64,000 nucleotides of DNA from Eukaryota sp. TZLM1-RC (taxonomy: Eukaryota > Protista > Metamonada: BaSk clade): positions 1,176,881 to 1,240,880 of the forward strand of contig JAUPSS010000010.1 of the NCBI GenBank assembly GCA_040285825.1, written 5' to 3'. Shown here piece after piece: positions 9,103 to 57,625 of this stretch (position 1 is its first letter; every line of letters begins with the position of its first letter). The notes below the pieces were generated by a model, which was not told the DNA's origin, searched no databases, and saw only the letters and a program-made list of their open reading frames with translations. Made by a program: the position numbers and the translations under genes.

Positions 9103-10075
9103 TTAATAACCATAGACACGTACGCTGCCATCAGTGGTACCAACATACAAGCTTGATCCATCATTGCTCCATGCAAGAGAAAGACATTTGGGAATTTCAG
9201 TGTTTTCGAATAGAGGTTGGGGAACAATGGTTTCGACAAGAGTGGCGTTTTCAATATCGAACACCTTGACACCTGAGTTGGTGGCGGCATAGAGTGCGTA
9301 CTTGGTGGGGTGGAAGACCATGTGGTTAATTTCATCCTCGGCATCCAAAACCCAGAGCTTATTGGCACCTGGGATAGCCCAGAGAACAATTTTTCCGTCC
9401 TTTCCACCAGAAGCACAAAGAGTGGATTCAGGGGAGATAGCGACAGAGTTAATATAACCATTGTGGCCAAGGAGATCGGCATATAATTCTGTTTTGCCAA
9501 GGTTGAAGATCTTAACGAGCTTGTCCCATCCACCACTAACAATGATGAAATCATCAGTTCCGGCAAGTTGAGTAACCTTGACAGTGGATACCCAATCGTC
9601 ATGACAAGATCTGTCAATAACACCTTTGCATTCACCTAAAGTGTTCCAAATACGGATGGACTTATCACGCGATCCAGTAACAATTTGACGGTTATCAGGA
9701 GAAAAGGCAACACTAAGAACATCTCCTTTGTGACCTTGGAAGCGGGCGCTGGTCTTTCCAGTACCGAGTTCCCAGAGACGGCAGGTTTGATCCCATGAGG
9801 CAGTAAGGGCATATTGTCCATCTTCGGAGACAACGACTTCGGAAATAAAATGTGCGTGACTAAAGATAAGATATTAAATGAATAACAAACCCAACTAAAC
9901 TGCGGAGGGGGACGGCGAATTCAGTAACATCACCAGTGACTCTCCAAACAAGAGCAGTCTTGTCTCTGGATCCAGTGACAATTGCGTGATCATCTCCAGG
10001 AATGGTGGCGATGGAGGTAACCCAACCGTTGTGGCCTTGGAAAAAACCCTTTTCGAGAAGTTGAGCAGGATTCAT
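9103..10075 (-). CDS. RACK1: Receptor for activated C kinase 1 (WD40, 313 aa)
   Basis: GHNGWVTSIAT, TGSRDKT..VW, GH.HFISEVV, GSRDKSIRIWNTLGECK, GHNGYINSVAISP motifs. A 31-nt intron (9860-9890) restores one continuous frame. Confidence 0.95.
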
Positions 10076-11690: not shown

Positions 11691-11700
11691 GATAGCTGGA

Positions 11701-14060
11701 TGGGTAATTCCCTTAAGTACACAATCAATTTTGGTGTGGAATAATGGCAAAAACTAGCCTTTCATTACCACGCATTCTGGCTTCTGCAATTGCAAACATA
11801 TTGAGGCAAGCCAGCTTATATCTATTGAAAAACTTTGTTGAGCCTTTGTTACTGGTTTTGCAACTCTCACTGTTACAAGCTAATAAACCATGACATGCAG
11901 TAACTGGAGTCTTTTCTCATCTATAGCATCTGGGATTTGTTACTCTTCAAAACGTTGCAACCTTTTCAAAACAAACAGGACATTTTGCTGAAGTGAAAGC
12001 TTCATTAATCATTAATATTTCAACTCCATTTCTTTTCAGAAATTGAATCCATCCAATACCTCGAGTGGGTCTCTGATGTTTCAAATTCTTGGAACCTTCT
12101 TTACCGTAATCACTCCTTAGAATTAAAGTGTCTTTTGGGTTGCCAAACTCCTGAACAACGTGTTTTAACAACCAACTGTCAGATTTTTGCTTGTGAATAA
12201 AAACTTGCATTTAATGAATGCTCTACAAGTCAGAACTGTAAAAGTCAATTGTCAAAAAAAATTGCCGAAGTTTGGCAACCACAAAGTTTGTTTTTTCTTC
12301 CTCTTTGCATCAAAGTGCCTTTCTCTCCATCATGATTGTTGAAAACCTCCCTTTTCACGGTCCAGGCCCTCATATTGCTTTCTTACCCATTATATCATAC
12401 TGCTCTACGTTGTTTCCCTCTTCTTTGTTGACTCTATTGAATATCTTTCCACTGATAACATCATCCTTTGAAACACCCATTTGGAGAAAAATTAGTTCAC
12501 TTCTCACAAGCATTTTGTTTCTTGTTCAATATTGACCAGACTATCAGCAGATGTTCACTTTTCTCTTCTCATGAAAAGTTTGCTGTCGCCTTTAAAACGC
12601 TCTTGGAGCCTCTCAGACGGCCGCTTAGTAATGAATGTAGAAAGTTTGTGATCTCTTTTCTGAAGGTTTCATCAGTTGTTCTTGACATATAATCTTTACT
12701 CTTCTTATTGGATGTTGTTGCTGGGTCAAACAATCGTATCGTTGGAGAAAAGCTTGCTGTCGAATTTTAAACGCTCTTGGAGCATCTCAGACGGCCGCTT
12801 AGTAATGTCAATCATGTACTTGTTTGCTTTGTGCTGATTGTTCAGTGTCTTTTTCAAGTATTGACTACTAATGGTGGAGTAGTTGGATAAGGAATTGTTG
12901 AATTGTGGTATTATTTAGCTCATTTAATAATAAAACAGTTTTTCTACAAACTTGGAATAATCTATAGAAGTTGCTGAATTGGCAGCAAATGCGGATAGTT
13001 CCGTGTTTGCACCTTCGATAATCATTTTGTTAGACTCCATCATTTGTTTCTTGTCGTAATCTACCTCAGTTTACTTTGTCGCCCATCGTTTTTGTTTTTC
13101 ATTTATCCTACTTTTCAAAGAATAAGACATCTGAGTCATGCTCAACCTTTTGATTTTCTTGTCCTGATTCATCATCCGACTATTTCTTTGCTGTTCGGTT
13201 TCATGTTCAGGCACCATGGCTAATTTTTGACCCGTCTTTTTTACAGCCATTATACAATAAATCACGTTTTCCAAGATCACAAACAACATTTCGTTTGTGT
13301 TGAAAAGTGTCAACATCAACATCATCAATTAATAAATCACAAATACTAGCCTTGTTCTCTGGCTTACAGTTCTGACCTTGTCAATTTCGACGAACCAATT
13401 CTGATGCAATATTTAATTCATTTGTGTGGATAATGTTGATGAATTTATAAATCTTTTGTTTGAACATTAATTGGTTTAAATCGATAATAGTCCAAAAGTC
13501 AAATTGCTCAGGTAATTTAAATCTATGGACTTGATCCTGTTTATGACCATTTTTAACATTTGTAAGAGTGGGAACATTTTGATTTGTAATAATTCATTTG
13601 AATTGAATCAAAGAATCAGGCTTGAAGCCATCAAGACTTGGCTCATTTTCTTGACCATACTCGGTTTCGATGGTTTCTGTGTCAAAATCTTCCTGTTTTC
13701 GATATTTGTATTTTCAATATACATTTCTCGGTTCAGTAATTTTTTTGTTATTTTCGCTGGCGCTTCGGTGTTTGTTAATCAAAAATCGCTTTTCTAATTG
13801 TTTTTGATGAAAGATTTAATTAACAATTTGATCTTCTCTTTTTTGGACCAGGATTTGCTTCAACATTTCCATCCATTGTTAAATCAACAGAAAATGATTT
13901 TGTTGATAGGAGATGTTGAAAGCTACTGGATTGAAAACATAACTTATAAACATAATTATCAAACCTAACATTATCAAAATAACAATTTGATATTCAGGTT
14001 GAAGGAGGAGGTGAGAAGTGAGCCGGTTATGTCGTTATCCTTTTCATCGTTTTGCTGCAT
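11701..14060 (-). mobile_element. Fanzor1 element, family A, copy 1 (pseudogenised)
   Basis: Colinear with 54179-57270: VVCDLGKRDLL, INEAFTSAKCPVC, HGLLAC, FNRYKLACLNM. Contains stops, frameshifts, a ~650-bp insertion and internal deletions; 2A-like motif at 13844-13885. Confidence 0.9.
12291..12945. mobile_element. Unclassified insertion inside Fanzor copy 1
   Basis: Absent from copy 2; flanked by ACAAAGTT/ACAAACTT (possible TSD); contains 61-bp direct repeats at 12573-12633 and 12747-12807. Confidence 0.6.
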
Positions 14061-15614
14061 GATGTTAGAAGAATGGGAAGAGTCAAGATAATCTCGCTGG
14101 CTGGCACGATGTCTGACATGATGATTGCTAATTTCCAAAATAGTAGCAAATGCCTATCCAATGTATTTCTATTACTAGTTTTCAGCATCAGCTCGACTCA
14201 TCCTCTTCTGATGTATAGCAATGTGTTACTCCTATTGAGTCCTCTCGGCTTTTCTGTCGTACTTCCTGCCAGTGAGAACCAAGTACGTCGTGCTTTTTTG
14301 CTTTCAAACAACAACAACAGCGATAATTGATGTTTTCAAGGATGGAAGACATGTTTAATCCAAAAAGAAATTTAAGATTTCATAGTGGGTCAACAATTCG
14401 TTTGATCGAGATGCATGTGTTCAGATGTGGTAGTTTCTGAACTTAACACAGGCCTGCTTCGACCTTGTTCTAAGAGTCTTTTACTTATCATTGTTGTTAT
14501 TGTTGATAGTTCGCATTATCAAAATCAATGAACCACATTGAGGCTTTTGTGGAACCACTTGTAAGTATGTTGTGACCTGAAAATGAAGATGATAATAGTT
14601 TTGGGAAATGTTGTATTGAGCAGCTGATCGCTTTTGCAGTTTTTCTTCTTAAATACCAAAACACGGTAATATCTTGTACAAAATTTTCTCAATGATTTCC
14701 GACGTTTAATAAAAGAAAGAGCAAGAAAAGAATTGAGCTTTTTTTCTGGCACAGCAGAATTGGTTTTTGTATTTTCAAAACCATTCCGGAAATGATGACC
14801 AAAGCACTGCTACATTTGGGAATGAGCATGAAAATCACTCAAATAAATCGACGTTGTTCATGCATGTATTGAGGATATTGAGTTAACACTTTTAGGTTAG
14901 TTGTTTTGTTTGATTATCAAAAATCAACGATGTGTACGAAAACTTTCTGTAGTTTCTTCGTATTGAAAAACTTTCCAAATTCCGTCCTACACATGATGAT
15001 GTGATTGTGAAAATCTGAAATGACATAGACAATTTTAGGATTGACAAGCAGTACATGGCTTTCGAATCATGTAGATGTCGGTCATAAGTGGAAATTCAGG
15101 AGGTTTACCTATAGGGCGAATTTGTAACAATATTTTTTGCTTATCTCAAAGGACCAAAGAAAATGGGGACAATAGCAACCCAGGGTGTGAAGTGAAAATT
15201 TGCAAAATAAGTGTACAAGCAATGTTCTCATTAAAACTTATTATTATTTATTAATTATTGAATGTGAAAGCTAGCAGTTGGAAACTTTGCAAATAAAAAT
15301 CTACACCACCTGGACAATTGTTGACAACTCTAGCAACCCCTGTTGGCGATAATGCTTGAAGCTGAAATTGGTGACGATAATAATAGCTGGAACCACGGTT
15401 ATCTCTCTTGCAAATGAAGAAAATCTAAAATCAAAGTAAACATGCCTTCACATATTTTATTTAGTTTTATTAAAAAAAACAATAGCCAGCAAAAAAGTAT
15501 AGTTAATGATAAATAGTTAATGTACAGAGGGAAAAGTAAAAACCCAACAGAAAAAGAAAATGTCAAAAGAAGAAAAACATTGGCAAAGAGAGAAATTACA
15601 AAACTCAGACCCAA

Positions 15615-54165: not shown

Positions 54166-54178
54166 TCTTGTGGAGGTG

Positions 54179-54260
54179 TGGGAAATTCCCATAAATACAC
54201 GATCAATTTTCGTGTGGAATAATTACAAAAACTATCTACTACACAGATACTGAGGCCTTT
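54179..54260 (-). ncRNA. Candidate omegaRNA scaffold at the right end of Fanzor family A
   Basis: About 50 nt after the stop are conserved between both copies; hairpin ACACGA-AAAUUGA-UCGUGU with possible outer AUUCC/GGAAU pairing; expected position for a Fanzor omegaRNA. Confidence 0.55.
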
Positions 54261-55568
54261 CATTGCCACTCATTCTGGCTTCAGCAATTGCAAACATATT
54301 CAGACAAGCCAGCTTATTTCTATTGAAAAGCTTTGTTGAGCCTTTGTTACTGAGTTTGCAACTTTGACTGTTACAAGCTAATAAACCATGACATGTAGTA
54401 ACTGGAGTCTTTTCTCTTCTATACACTCTGGGATTTGTTACTCTCAAAAACGTAGCAACCTTTTCAAAACAAACAGGACATTTTGCTGAAGTGAAAGCTT
54501 CATTAATCATCAATACTTCAAATCCATTTCTCTTCAGAAATTGAATCCATCCAATGCCTCGAGTAGGTCTCTGATGTTTCAAATTTTTAAAACCTTTTTT
54601 ACCATAATCACCCATTAGTATTAAAGTGTCTTTCGGGTTGCCAAACTGCTGAACAAGGCTTTTTAACAACCAACTTTCAGTCTTTTGCTTGTGAATAAAA
54701 ACTTGCATTTTATGAATGCTCCACAAGTCAAGACTGTAAAATTCAATTGTCAAAAAAACTTGCCGAAGTTTGGCAACCACAAAGTTGGAAAAATCTATAA
54801 AAGTTGCTGAATTTGCAGCAAACGCGGATAATTCGGTGTTTGCATCTTCATTTGTCATTTCGTTAGACTCTATCATTTGGTTTCTGTTGTAATCTACCTC
54901 AGTATACTTTATCGCCCATCGTTTTTGCTTTTCATTCATCCTACTTTTCAAAGACCAGGAAATCTGAGTCATTCTCAACCATTTGTACTTCTTGTCTTGA
55001 TTCATCACCCCACTATTTTTTTGCTGTTCCGTTTCATGTTCAGGCACCATTGCTAGTTCTTCATCAGTCTTTTTGCTGCCGCAATACAATAAATCACGTT
55101 TTCCAGGATCACAAACAACAATTCGTTTGTCTTGAAAAGTATCAACATCAACATCATCAATATATAAATCCGAAATTCTGGCCTTGTTGTCTGGCTTACA
55201 TTTCTGACCTTGTAAATCCTGACGAACAAATTCTAATGCAATATTAAATCCATCTGTGTGGATAATGTTGTGGAATTTATAGCTCTTCTGTTTGAACATT
55301 GGTTAGACCAAAAGTCAAATTGCTCAGGTGGATTGAATTTCGCAATTTGGGCTAATGTATTGGACATCTTCAGCGTCTGTGTAGATGATAAATCATCCAT
55401 CAATGTTTGTTTAACAATTCTCCATAGTGTTCTTGTATCAATAGGAAAATATCCAGGGCCTACAGTGGTTGAAACAGGAGAAATATGACAAGGTTTTATC
55501 TCTCTACAGGAGCTATATTGGGCAATTGTAATTGCTGGTGTTAGGAATATTTGAGGATCTGTTTCCAC
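54232..55568 (-). pseudogene. Fanzor1 nuclease C-terminal portion (one frameshift at about 55300)
   Basis: ISPVST...YFPIDT.TL, F...I.TDG, RuvC-I VVCDPGKRDLL, MGDYG, RuvC-II INEAFTSAKCPVC, HGLLAC...C, RuvC-III FNRNKLACLNM, RPQYLCSR. Confidence 0.9.
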
Positions 55569-55574
55569 AGATCC

Positions 55575-56175
55575 TCATTATAAGGGCCAGTGAAATTGAA
55601 TAAATATCTTTATCTTTTATCTCTATTCTGTACAATGTCTAACCATACAGCATCAATATTTACTAGTTTTCGTCGATTCATTTACAAGGTCTACATCACT
55701 TGTACCTTTAAAAGAACTTAATGCCTTAGAAGTTGCAGATGCTTTGATATGGAACGTCTGCGCTATTTTTGGCATATCTATGTCTATACATAGTGACAAT
55801 GGCCCTGAGTTCGCCAACGAATTATTTAATTTGCTTTGCCAAAGAATGTCAATTGAAGTGTCTAAATCAATTCCTTACCATTCTGAGAGCAATGGATTGG
55901 TTGAAAGAAAACATCGAGATGTGATACAATGTATAAGGAAATTATTAATAGATTACAACGACTATCATTCATGGTCCACATATGTACCTATAACTCAACT
56001 ATTAATTAATTCAACCAAAAGTAGAATAACAAATCACACTCCATACGAACTGATGTTTGGGTCATCTATCAGCCCAAGATCAGATCCTGCTAACATCCTA
56101 GGAGGCATTTTCGATTTTGAATCCAATGTACCATTTTTGCAAGACCTCAAATTTAAGAATCAACGCCTTAAATGG
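55575..56175 (+). mobile_element. Retroviral-type (Ty3/gypsy or Ginger) integrase core fragment nested in Fanzor copy 2
   Basis: VDSFTR, IHSDNGPEF, YHSESNGLVER, NHTPYELMFG (DDE motifs). Confidence 0.85.
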
Positions 56176-56271
56176 GAAGATGTTGATTTGAGGTCATTGA
56201 TTTGAATTGAATCAATGGATCAGGCTTGAAACCACTACGACTTGGCTCAATTTTTTTGACCTTATTCGGTT

Positions 56272-57270
56272 TCAATGGTTTTTTGTCAAAATCTGCCTGT
56301 TCTCAATATTCAACATTGTATTCTCAATACAAATTTCTCGGTTCAGTGCATTTTGTTGTTTTTTCAGCTTACGCTTTGATGTTTGTTGGTCAAAAATCGC
56401 ATTTCTAATAATTTTTGATAGAGGAGTTGATTCAAAATTAGATCTTCTCTTTCTGGGACCAGGATTTGCTTCAACATCTCCATCAATTGTTAAATCAACA
56501 GTAAATGGGTTTGTTGATAGAAGATGTTGGCAGCTTCTGGATTGAAAAGATAAATTATAAACATAATAATCAAACTCAACATTATCAAAATAACAATTTA
56601 AGACACAACATCCCATATCTAAAGTGCAAGAATCTAAACCACAAAAATGAACAAACTCATAAGCATCAAAACAACAATGTAAAACAAAACATATACAAAA
56701 GAAACATCCCACATCCACAGTACAAGTACGTAAACCACGAAAAACAACAAACCCAAAAACATCAAGACAACCTTTCAAAACAAAACACAAACAAGAAAAA
56801 CATCCCATATTCAAAGTACAAGTACCTAAACCAAAAACATCAAAGTAACAACAATGTAAAACAAAACACAAACCAGAACAACATCCCATATCTACAGTAC
56901 AAATAGCTAAACCATGAAAAACAACAAACTCAATAACATCAAAGTAACAATTCAAAACAAAACACGAAGAAGAAGAGCATCCCATATCCAAGGTGATTAG
57001 CACCATTGCTGATTCAACAGCACCCATATCATGACTCACATGATGACTCAGAAAAGTGCAATACTCTACCCCCACGGAAGAATCAGAACGACGATTTCGA
57101 TAAGAAATCGAGACTCTGACCTTCCGTTTATTCCTGTAAAACAGAATGACTGTTCCCGACTGAGGAGTTCGGGAAGAAGTACTCGGCTGTTCTTTGAACA
57201 ACAGGTTGAAGGAGGAGGTGGGAACTGAGTCCGTAACCTCGTTATCCTTGTTCTCCTTTTGTGGATGCAT
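56272..57270 (-). CDS. Fanzor-A leader ORF: Cys-rich hydrophobic repeats, 2A/StopGo motif, basic NLS-like stretch
   Basis: From ATG 57270 (MHPQKENKDNE...) to DLTIDGDVEANPGP-RKRRS (motif at 56455-56496); the frame ends at 56272. Confidence 0.65.
   Translation of the reverse strand: MHPQKENKDNEVTDSVPTSSFNLLFKEQPSTSSRTPQSGTVILFYRNKRKVRVSISYRNRRSDSSVGVEYCTFLSHHVSHDMGAVESAMVLITLDMGCSSSSCFVLNCYFDVIEFVVFHGLAICTVDMGCCSGLCFVLHCCYFDVFGLGTCTLNMGCFSCLCFVLKGCLDVFGFVVFRGLRTCTVDVGCFFCICFVLHCCFDAYEFVHFCGLDSCTLDMGCCVLNCYFDNVEFDYYVYNLSFQSRSCQHLLSTNPFTVDLTIDGDVEANPGPRKRRSNFESTPLSKIIRNAIFDQQTSKRKLKKQQNALNREICIENTMLNIENRQILTKNH
56570..57030. repeat. Degenerate tandem repeats (~5 units, ~80-100 bp)
   Basis: Recurrent AAACAAAACAC...ACATCCCATAT...AGTAC on the + strand, encoding CT.DMGC...CFVL.C.FD on the - strand; absent from copy 1. 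Confidence 0.75.
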
Positions 57271-57309
57271 ATTTTGACCAACGAAATTATTTGTGGAGTT
57301 TTTCAAGAC

Positions 57310-57625
57310 GTTTAACCTACGAACCTTTATATGCACCTTTACGAACACATGGGGCTGTTGCCACTGGTCCACTGGCACTTCATACCCAAGGCAACTCATC
57401 TATGATTGCTGCGGCAGTTGAACATTCCTTCATTGTTTACTCCACAGATCGATTACACATACTCTACACTGGTCCTCCTCTTCCTGGACCTATCAGTCAC
57501 ATGATATGGGTGAAGCGAGTTTTAGTCTTCTCTATATCCAATTCTGTCTACTCGTGGACACCTGGATCTCAAACAACTTCTGTCGTCCTCTCTTCCCATG
57601 CCCACATAGCCTCTCTACTCATTTT
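57310..57625 (+). pseudogene. N-terminal fragment of UTP21/WDR36
   Basis: LYAPLRT.G.V...P......G....I..AVE.SF.VY....L.ILY..P..P..I matches the Utp21 N-terminus; no ATG; ends after ~105 codons. Confidence 0.7.

Follow-up and report, generated by a model that had tools for sequence, protein, structure and literature searches.

Can a eukaryotic RNA-guided nuclease be freed, during translation, from the polypeptide that is made ahead of it? The question is raised by two copies of a Fanzor1-related mobile element in a 64-kb window (the whole stretch of DNA analysed here) of contig JAUPSS010000010.1, assembly GCA_040285825.1 (Eukaryota sp. TZLM1-RC), in which a StopGo (2A) ribosome-skipping motif stands upstream of the nuclease part. 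The TZLM1-RC isolate is Skoliomonas litria, an anaerobic, free-living metamonad from soda lakes (PMC11603281). Its assembly was obtained from Nanopore R9.4 reads with Illumina correction (PMC11316075), an origin that bears on single-base frameshifts within repeated elements; two open reading frames (ORFs) of the window are letter-for-letter identical to JAUPSS010000010.1. The two window copies were compared by BLAST with two fuller paralogues of the element (L001 and L004), and with each other by self-BLAST. The window holds two dead copies of a Skoliomonas mobile element, the functional form of which was probably a one-frame polyprotein with a leader released by StopGo and an exonuclease-Fanzor1 fusion produced as a separate protein.

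StopGo Motif of the Two Copies

Both motifs lie where the preliminary description of this DNA had placed them, on the minus strand, which it had left unstated. In copy 2, the minus strand reads DLTIDGDVEANPGP at 56496..56455, followed by RKRRS; the 14-residue element is composed of the hexapeptide DLTIDG and the core DVEANPGP, with the predicted skip between 56458 (Gly) and 56457 (Pro), and 257 codons precede it in the same frame of the window. In copy 1, the minus strand reads DLTMDGNVEANPGP at 13885..13844, followed by KKRRS; here the hexapeptide is DLTMDG and the core NVEANPGP, with Asn at the first core position. When all six frames of the window are scanned, NPGP occurs at these two homologous places only. 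A chance origin of the motif was ruled out: the expectation per window, calculated from the six-frame residue frequencies, is 3.5e-5 for D[VI]ExNPGP and 5e-12 for the 14-mer, and the motif occurs in none of 300 shuffles.

The StopGo core is D(V/I)ExNPGP; the preferred residue ahead of the Asp is Gly, and Ala is one of those favoured at the variable position. Asn at core position 1 and His at position 3, the latter a rare variant reported as active in viruses, have been flagged as probable functional variants, the tested examples being about 90% or more active (PMC12846837). Copy 2 conforms to D(V/I)ExNPGP with DVEANPGP, and copy 1 conforms to the extended form (D/G/C/N)(V/I)ExNPGP with NVEANPGP. 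The core alone is insufficient for skipping, and it is the upstream context that sets the activity (Odon et al., PMC3708506). Among the four main upstream classes is DLTxDG (motif 4; signature WV(R/K)DLTx[acidic]G), the activity of which is about 100% in vitro in rabbit reticulocyte lysate (PMC12846837). By sequence, DLTIDG belongs to this class, and all 14 residues of the window peptide fit a StopGo class that has proved active in experiments.

One Reading Frame from Leader to Fanzor1

The proposal that the 2A motif heads a single frame ending in Fanzor1 is borne out by the paralogues. In P0002-P0006 the frame does not end at the motif; a basic linker follows, and after it ...VMCFDLETY..., which is ExoI of a PolB-type exonuclease. 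The segment L001:8455-10815 is a single frame of 787 codons, interrupted by one stop; it holds the leader repeats, then an intact DLTIDGDVEANPGP and the linker, then the three exonuclease motifs ExoI, ExoII and ExoIII, and last the Fanzor front. The segment L004:8001-9761 gives 587 codons from the leader ATG, likewise with one stop, which lies at another place than that of L001; L004 is open at the L001 stop site. The frame is carried onward by L004 9947-10891 into the Fanzor part just upstream of RuvC-I, and the window ORF 55299..54232 extends from RuvC-I to the Fanzor C-terminus. Taken together, the overlapping open frames of different copies cover a single ancestral frame some 1,400 codons long.

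The exonuclease motifs ExoI (DxE), ExoII (NxxxFD) and ExoIII (YxxxD) are readable in L001, and the Pfam family DNA_pol_B_exo1 is matched by L001:9331-10815 with 31.8 bits and by P0162, a protein of a related family described below, with 50.1 bits (cutoff 23). A DEDDy exonuclease is thus recognised in the paralogues, and the domain is missing from both window copies. The preliminary description had expected the product released by skipping to start with P-(R/K)KRR and to be a Fanzor1 bearing a nuclear localization signal (NLS). The start would be as expected, a Pro followed by basic, NLS-like stretches; the remainder would be an exonuclease-Fanzor1 fusion rather than Fanzor1 alone, and in other families Ulp1 domains stand behind the 2A.

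Among solved Fanzor1 proteins, the 355-aa ORF 55299..54232 matches those of Parasitella parasitica (9cf0, 8e-24), Spizellomyces punctatus (8gkh, 6e-22) and Guillardia theta (9cer, 5e-5); in the representative library, 1,144 relatives of this ORF were found. VVCDPGKRD (RuvC-I), INEAFTS (RuvC-II), and CPVC with the next Cys pair align with the Parasitella protein; for the segment P0015:560-1281, the match to 8gkh reaches 6e-33. The catalytic Asp of RuvC-III (NRD) is absent: NRN is read instead in the window copies (54310-54325), in P0015 and P0163, which are intact Skoliomonas proteins, and in the P0162 gene model. Within one match list, NRN is found in 7 relatives (P0019, P0020, P0023, P0024, P0040, P0107 and P0114) versus NRD in 63 others. 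Because the Asn is conserved across the clade, it looks like an altered catalytic site rather than the result of decay.

Leader Region

The leader-2A ORF of copy 2 (56272..57270, minus strand) runs from the element ATG to a premature stop and is annotated by NCBI as a 332-aa hypothetical protein; S. litria has eleven annotated paralogues of it. About 95 hydrophilic residues are followed by a tandem repeat array and then by the motif. The array (56607..56991, minus strand; 96 bp x 4.2 copies according to Tandem Repeats Finder) encodes Cys-rich, hydrophobic 32-aa units with a composition of 15% Cys and 12.5% Phe. The number of repeat units differs among P0001-P0010, with the reading frame kept.

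Searches with the leader returned no Pfam family, no retroelement domains and no neighbour in the Atlas, and its AlphaFold2 single-sequence model contains no confident fold (mean predicted local distance difference test score, pLDDT, 46). On the 5' side of copy 2, the leader frame runs on without a stop for 43 codons past the element end (57271-57399), as far as an ATG in the flanking DNA at 57399. Copy 2 also lacks about 150 bp that are found upstream of the leader ATG in copy 1 (14196-13995, equivalent to L004 7848-8066).

Related Families and Wider Distribution

The search with the Fanzor ORF led to P0015 (1,281 aa, Skoliomonas sp. TZLM3-RCL), which is encoded by a raw, uninterrupted exonuclease-Fanzor ORF at L003 6040-9873. 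The search with P0015 led in turn to P0162 (1,846 aa, from the sister species), in which NLVLDGDVEANPGP comes after a leader of 72 aa and is itself followed by two Ulp1 (Peptidase_C48) domains, a linker rich in Lys, the exonuclease and the Fanzor; its leader, 2A and the first Ulp1 part lie in one raw frame, L005 4758-5729. The two 'introns' of its gene model, at L005 5709-5740 and 7667-7695, are located at a T-run and in a Lys-rich stretch, and they look like frameshifts, either real or due to Nanopore homopolymer errors, rather than introns; long 'intact' database proteins of this family therefore need checking against the DNA. P0162 was considered as an intact 2A copy and rejected, since its gene model spans three frames in the DNA; it is nearly intact, not intact.

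A third family is represented by P0165, in which SWKKDLTVDGDVEANPGP stands between a leader of 30 aa and a Ulp1 domain and which carries the W-x-K-DLT signature of motif 4; in L006 it is followed by an exonuclease-Fanzor gene. About 200 bp upstream of the good 2A of this TZLM3-RCL element, at L006 6880-6939, there is one further, degenerate 2A (read as DLTVDGDIHPNPGP and SWEKDLTVDGDIHPNPGP), with His at the third core position, which suggests a tandem duplication of the leader-2A module.

The wider occurrence of the arrangement was also explored. The preliminary description had proposed scanning Fanzor/TnpB loci for the 2A motif; none of the best 150 Fanzor relatives in a library of 1.84 billion proteins carries it, in a set of gene models that may miss N-terminal parts. 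Relatives of the exonuclease-Fanzor fusion were not found in JGI metagenome contigs or in IMG/VR. A scan of metagenomes for the pattern DGDVEANPG returned 12 unrelated contigs, none of which contains a Fanzor, the exonuclease or Ulp1. In one of these sequences (L017 4562-4590, OMLO01007533.1), DGDVEANPGP is located about 30 residues upstream of an Exo_endo_phos domain of the apurinic/apyrimidinic endonuclease (APE) type, towards the end of a frame of 1,578 aa; the sequence probably belongs to a non-long-terminal-repeat (non-LTR) retrotransposon with an unusually long region ahead of the 2A.

Selection on the Peptide

The peptide DGDVEANPGP is identical in three element families from two Skoliomonas species, namely the window family, L005 (P0162) and L006 (P0165). 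Between any two of the families, its ten codons show 5-6 synonymous changes and 0 non-synonymous ones, against only 8-28% identity between families in the 36-40 residues that flank the motif on each side. The presence of synonymous differences only, against flanks that cannot be aligned, indicates that the StopGo peptide is under lasting selection at the amino-acid level. Decayed forms of the motif occur in paralogues that are dead by other criteria, NAGP in P0002 and VDANHGP in P0005.

Anatomy of the Window Copies

Copy 2 as a whole (57261..54178, minus strand) matches L004 8007-9111, which covers the leader, 2A and linker, and L004 10581-11992, which covers the Fanzor from upstream of RuvC-I to the 3' end. 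It lacks the intervening 1,469 bp of L004 (9112-10580), in place of which 602 bp of other DNA are present. The start of the predicted post-skip product (56275..56457, minus strand) consists of the Pro and the basic, NLS-like stretches PRKRRS and KRKLKK, and it is open for 61 codons up to the premature stop. This stop, at 56272, arises because the homopolymer at 56279..56284 is one nucleotide shorter, with A6 on the coding strand versus 7 in the alignment with L001 and L004. One DNA contig of run X1 has an extra T at this homopolymer; it may be a paralogue, or else the window may contain an assembly error. Of the four sequencing runs that were found, none is recorded as RNA, and the read data gave fragmented DNA contigs of the repeat family.

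From 56271 to 56173 (56173..56271, minus strand) the linker continues in the shifted frame up to a deletion breakpoint just before the ExoI motif, where the homology to L004 ends at 9111. The site of the exonuclease and Fanzor front is occupied by a filler on the plus strand (55571..56172), a fragment of an LTR-retrotransposon integrase (Pfam rve, 7e-5) that shares 64% nucleotide and 55% amino-acid identity with the integrase of an LTR element in L002. The latter, at L002 9578-16995, is a complete-looking LTR retrotransposon (protease, reverse transcriptase, RNase H and integrase) that lies within another Fanzor copy, the Fanzor C-terminus resuming at L002 16995. An insertion of this kind, followed by a deletion, would explain the integrase fragment of copy 2. 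The Fanzor1 remnant follows at 54232..55570 (minus strand), with the segment upstream of RuvC-I in another frame (55570-55300) and then the 355-aa ORF 55299..54232 with RuvC-I, RuvC-II, the zinc finger and RuvC-III (NRN). After the Fanzor stop, a 3' tail (54178..54231, minus strand) ends at about 54178 together with the homology to other copies.

Copy 1 (11693..14206, minus strand) is decayed. As delimited by self-BLAST and by BLAST against L004 and L001, it retains the 5' end, the 2A, a linker and the C-terminal half of the Fanzor; three in-frame stops occur in the linker soon after the motif, and further stops interrupt the Fanzor half. The repeat array is missing from it, as is the stretch corresponding to L004 9118-10779 (exonuclease and Fanzor front), and 657 bp are inserted at 12289-12945. 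The preliminary description had read copy 1 as running colinearly from the motif into the Fanzor region; the two are indeed colinear, but only through an internal deletion. It had further noted that both copies are frameshifted between the motif and RuvC, which is true and an understatement, in that about 1.5-1.7 kb, corresponding to the exonuclease and Fanzor front of the fuller copies, are missing from both. Both window copies are dead, internally deleted relics that have lost the exonuclease.

The left breakpoints of the two copies lie within 6 bp of each other, just before ExoI (window 56173 and 13563, or L004 9111 and 9117), and the right breakpoints differ (L004 10581 in copy 2 versus 10780 in copy 1). 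The shared left breakpoint may reflect one common deletion derivative or a preferred breakpoint. In P0011 (P9112_013004), another such derivative from S. litria, the Fanzor segment that immediately precedes RuvC-I directly follows a leader repeat unit. Loss of internal sequence with both ends retained seems to be common in this element family.

Proposed Mechanism

In the functional element, a single frame would encode, in order, the hydrophobic leader, the StopGo/2A peptide, a Pro with a basic, NLS-like linker, the PolB-type DEDDy 3'-5' exonuclease and Fanzor1. The ribosome would translate the leader and, at ...DVEANPG|P, fail to form the Gly-Pro bond, whereupon the leader would be released. 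Translation would then continue to yield the exonuclease-Fanzor fusion as a separate protein with a clean N-terminus, Pro-Arg-Lys-Arg-Arg, and this basic N-terminus could bring the fusion to the nucleus. We infer that skipping takes place on Skoliomonas ribosomes; the stretches PRKRRS and KRKLKK are putative NLSs, recognised by pattern only.

Several observations weigh against this mechanism. Among the copies examined, none was seen in which the whole leader-2A-exonuclease-Fanzor frame is uninterrupted. The gene model of P0162 (RCL1_003749) joins three frames via two 'introns' of about 30 nt, and in L006 the frame changes four times, in A-rich stretches. The only raw intact exonuclease-Fanzor ORF found, that of P0015, is without a 2A, its front being replaced relative to P0162. 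The leader is without a recognisable family or confident fold. The term 'nuclease' is applied by homology only, to a protein in which the RuvC-III Asp appears as Asn throughout the Skoliomonas clade. Finally, the literature search returned no demonstration of StopGo in any metamonad, which also favours a role of the peptide other than skipping, discussed below. With these points taken into account, StopGo release of a leader from an exonuclease-Fanzor1 fusion is still the probable mode of expression of the intact element.

As to the purpose of the 2A, we favour the inference that it frees the nuclease from whatever is translated upstream and gives it a defined start, the leader sequence itself mattering little. 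The leaders of the different families are unrelated and range from 30 to about 330 aa, the repeat number is free, and the window-family leader has no family, Atlas neighbour or confident fold; all of these suggest that its sequence matters little. The continuation of the copy 2 frame for 43 codons into flanking DNA also suggests that the 2A mainly sets the start of the nuclease. A more specific form of this proposal is that StopGo acts as an 'insulator' in a DNA-level RNA-guided-nuclease element, such that upstream translation, whether of a variable leader or even of a host frame, is cut off and a constant Pro-NLS start is ensured; in this form the proposal is tentative, though it deserves to be entertained.

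Alternative Explanations

A serious alternative remains, in which StopGo works but serves to co-express a functional leader (Cys-rich, and of membrane type or palmitoylated), or provides dual targeting, with the unskipped product at the membrane and the skipped product sent to the nucleus. The leaders of all three families are hydrophobic, dual targeting has been described for the N-terminal 2A-like signal sequences of the sea urchin (PMC4981915), and 2A has been proposed as a means of making an upstream product separately and in excess (Odon et al., PMC3708506). On the other hand, a leader with a function of its own would hardly be expected to be unalignable between families, to vary from about 30 to about 330 aa with a free repeat number, and to lack a family, an Atlas match and a confident fold. 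This role for the leader is accordingly judged rather unlikely, and less so than those that follow.

A second alternative is that the motif is a conserved, translated peptide with a role other than StopGo, such as a recognition or cleavage site, for instance for a Ulp1-type protease, or a structural element. Such a protease does lie directly behind the motif in P0162 and P0165. The window family, however, has the motif and no Ulp1, and Ulp1/SENP enzymes are known to cut after Gly-Gly rather than after NPG. Moreover, it would be strange if a peptide with another function matched, over 14 residues, a StopGo class that is both defined and active, and this explanation is considered improbable.

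Similarly improbable, and if anything slightly more so, is a passenger motif, one that the element once acquired from an RNA virus or a non-LTR retrotransposon and that is no longer relevant to it. The occurrence of DGDVEANPG in the 12 unrelated metagenome contigs, in one of them just before a non-LTR-type APE endonuclease, indicates that such modules are available for capture. A passenger would not be expected to accumulate 5-6 synonymous versus 0 non-synonymous differences in each family pair between unalignable flanks, nor to head the polyprotein, at an unchanged position, in each of three families and decay only in copies that are otherwise dead.

The possibility that the leader-2A ORF is a separate nested element or gene placed beside the Fanzor by accident, of which the preliminary description had raised the nested-retroelement case, finds some support in the window, where an integrase fragment separates the leader-2A and Fanzor parts of copy 2 and both copies are broken at this point, but it can hardly be upheld, and a nested-retroelement origin of the leader is excluded, as L001 and L004 carry leader, 2A, exonuclease and Fanzor front in one frame with no foreign DNA, and the integrase piece is a distinct fragment on the opposite strand that replaces the exonuclease, the leader itself having no retroelement domains.

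Comparison with Known Systems and Significance

StopGo is regarded chiefly as an RNA-virus device that cells seldom have in their genomes; current surveys place it in RNA viruses, in reverse-transcribing elements, among them non-LTR retrotransposons, and in a few, rare host genes (PMC12846837; bioRxiv 10.64898/2026.09.24.754024; PMC3708506). The literature search returned no paper joining Fanzor with 2A/StopGo, nor any report of 2A in RNA-guided nuclease genes or in elements of the DNA level, in agreement with the statement of the preliminary description that no 2A-processed RNA-guided nuclease is known to have been described. Likewise, it returned no description of a Fanzor fused with an exonuclease or Ulp1, or expressed as a polyprotein.

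The nearest described systems are APE-type non-LTR retrotransposons (L1Tc, Ingi, CR1, Crack and others; Heras 2006; Odon 2013, PMC3708506), which have a 2A where their ORF2 starts. In both cases, StopGo is located near the N-terminus of a single long frame, ahead of an endonuclease, and the motif decays among copies; in the APE-type elements, StopGo activity varies. These elements move through RNA and encode a reverse transcriptase, whereas the Skoliomonas element carries a PolB-type exonuclease and a Fanzor1, of the TnpB/Cas12 lineage, and no reverse transcriptase. With viral motif 4 (DLTxDG followed by D(V/I)ExNPGP; PMC12846837), the window element shares all 14 residues, DLTIDG and DVEANPGP. 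The viral examples, however, belong to RNA virus polyproteins, unlike the present one, which is found in the nuclear genome of a free-living metamonad, within a repeated element.

The similarity to known Fanzor1 proteins (8gkh, 9cf0 and 9cer) extends over the RuvC and zinc-finger half, in which the DPG of RuvC-I, the Glu of RuvC-II and the Cys pairs align. The differences are the N-terminal fusion to a DEDDy exonuclease, the position behind a 2A, the presence of Ulp1 in some families and the Asn of RuvC-III. Sea urchin NLR-type genes (PMC4981915) resemble the element in having a short, hydrophobic N-terminal leader that ends in a 2A, with two possible fates for the downstream product; they are host genes of immune type, with no described link to mobile elements or nucleases.

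A StopGo peptide at the head of a Fanzor polyprotein would bring the TnpB/Cas12 lineage, and a mobile element of the DNA level, into the range of StopGo. It would also mean that a eukaryotic element of this kind makes several proteins from one mRNA: the leader, the nuclease and, in some families, a Ulp1 protease. The element further points to a naturally occurring fusion between a proofreading-type exonuclease and an RNA-guided nuclease, a matter of direct relevance to editing tools, and the short 2A peptide, which can be tested, comes from a deep-branching eukaryote. If StopGo indeed insulates the nuclease from upstream translation, the Skoliomonas element would be the first natural 2A-processed RNA-guided nuclease, with an exonuclease fusion of the kind that genome engineers build.

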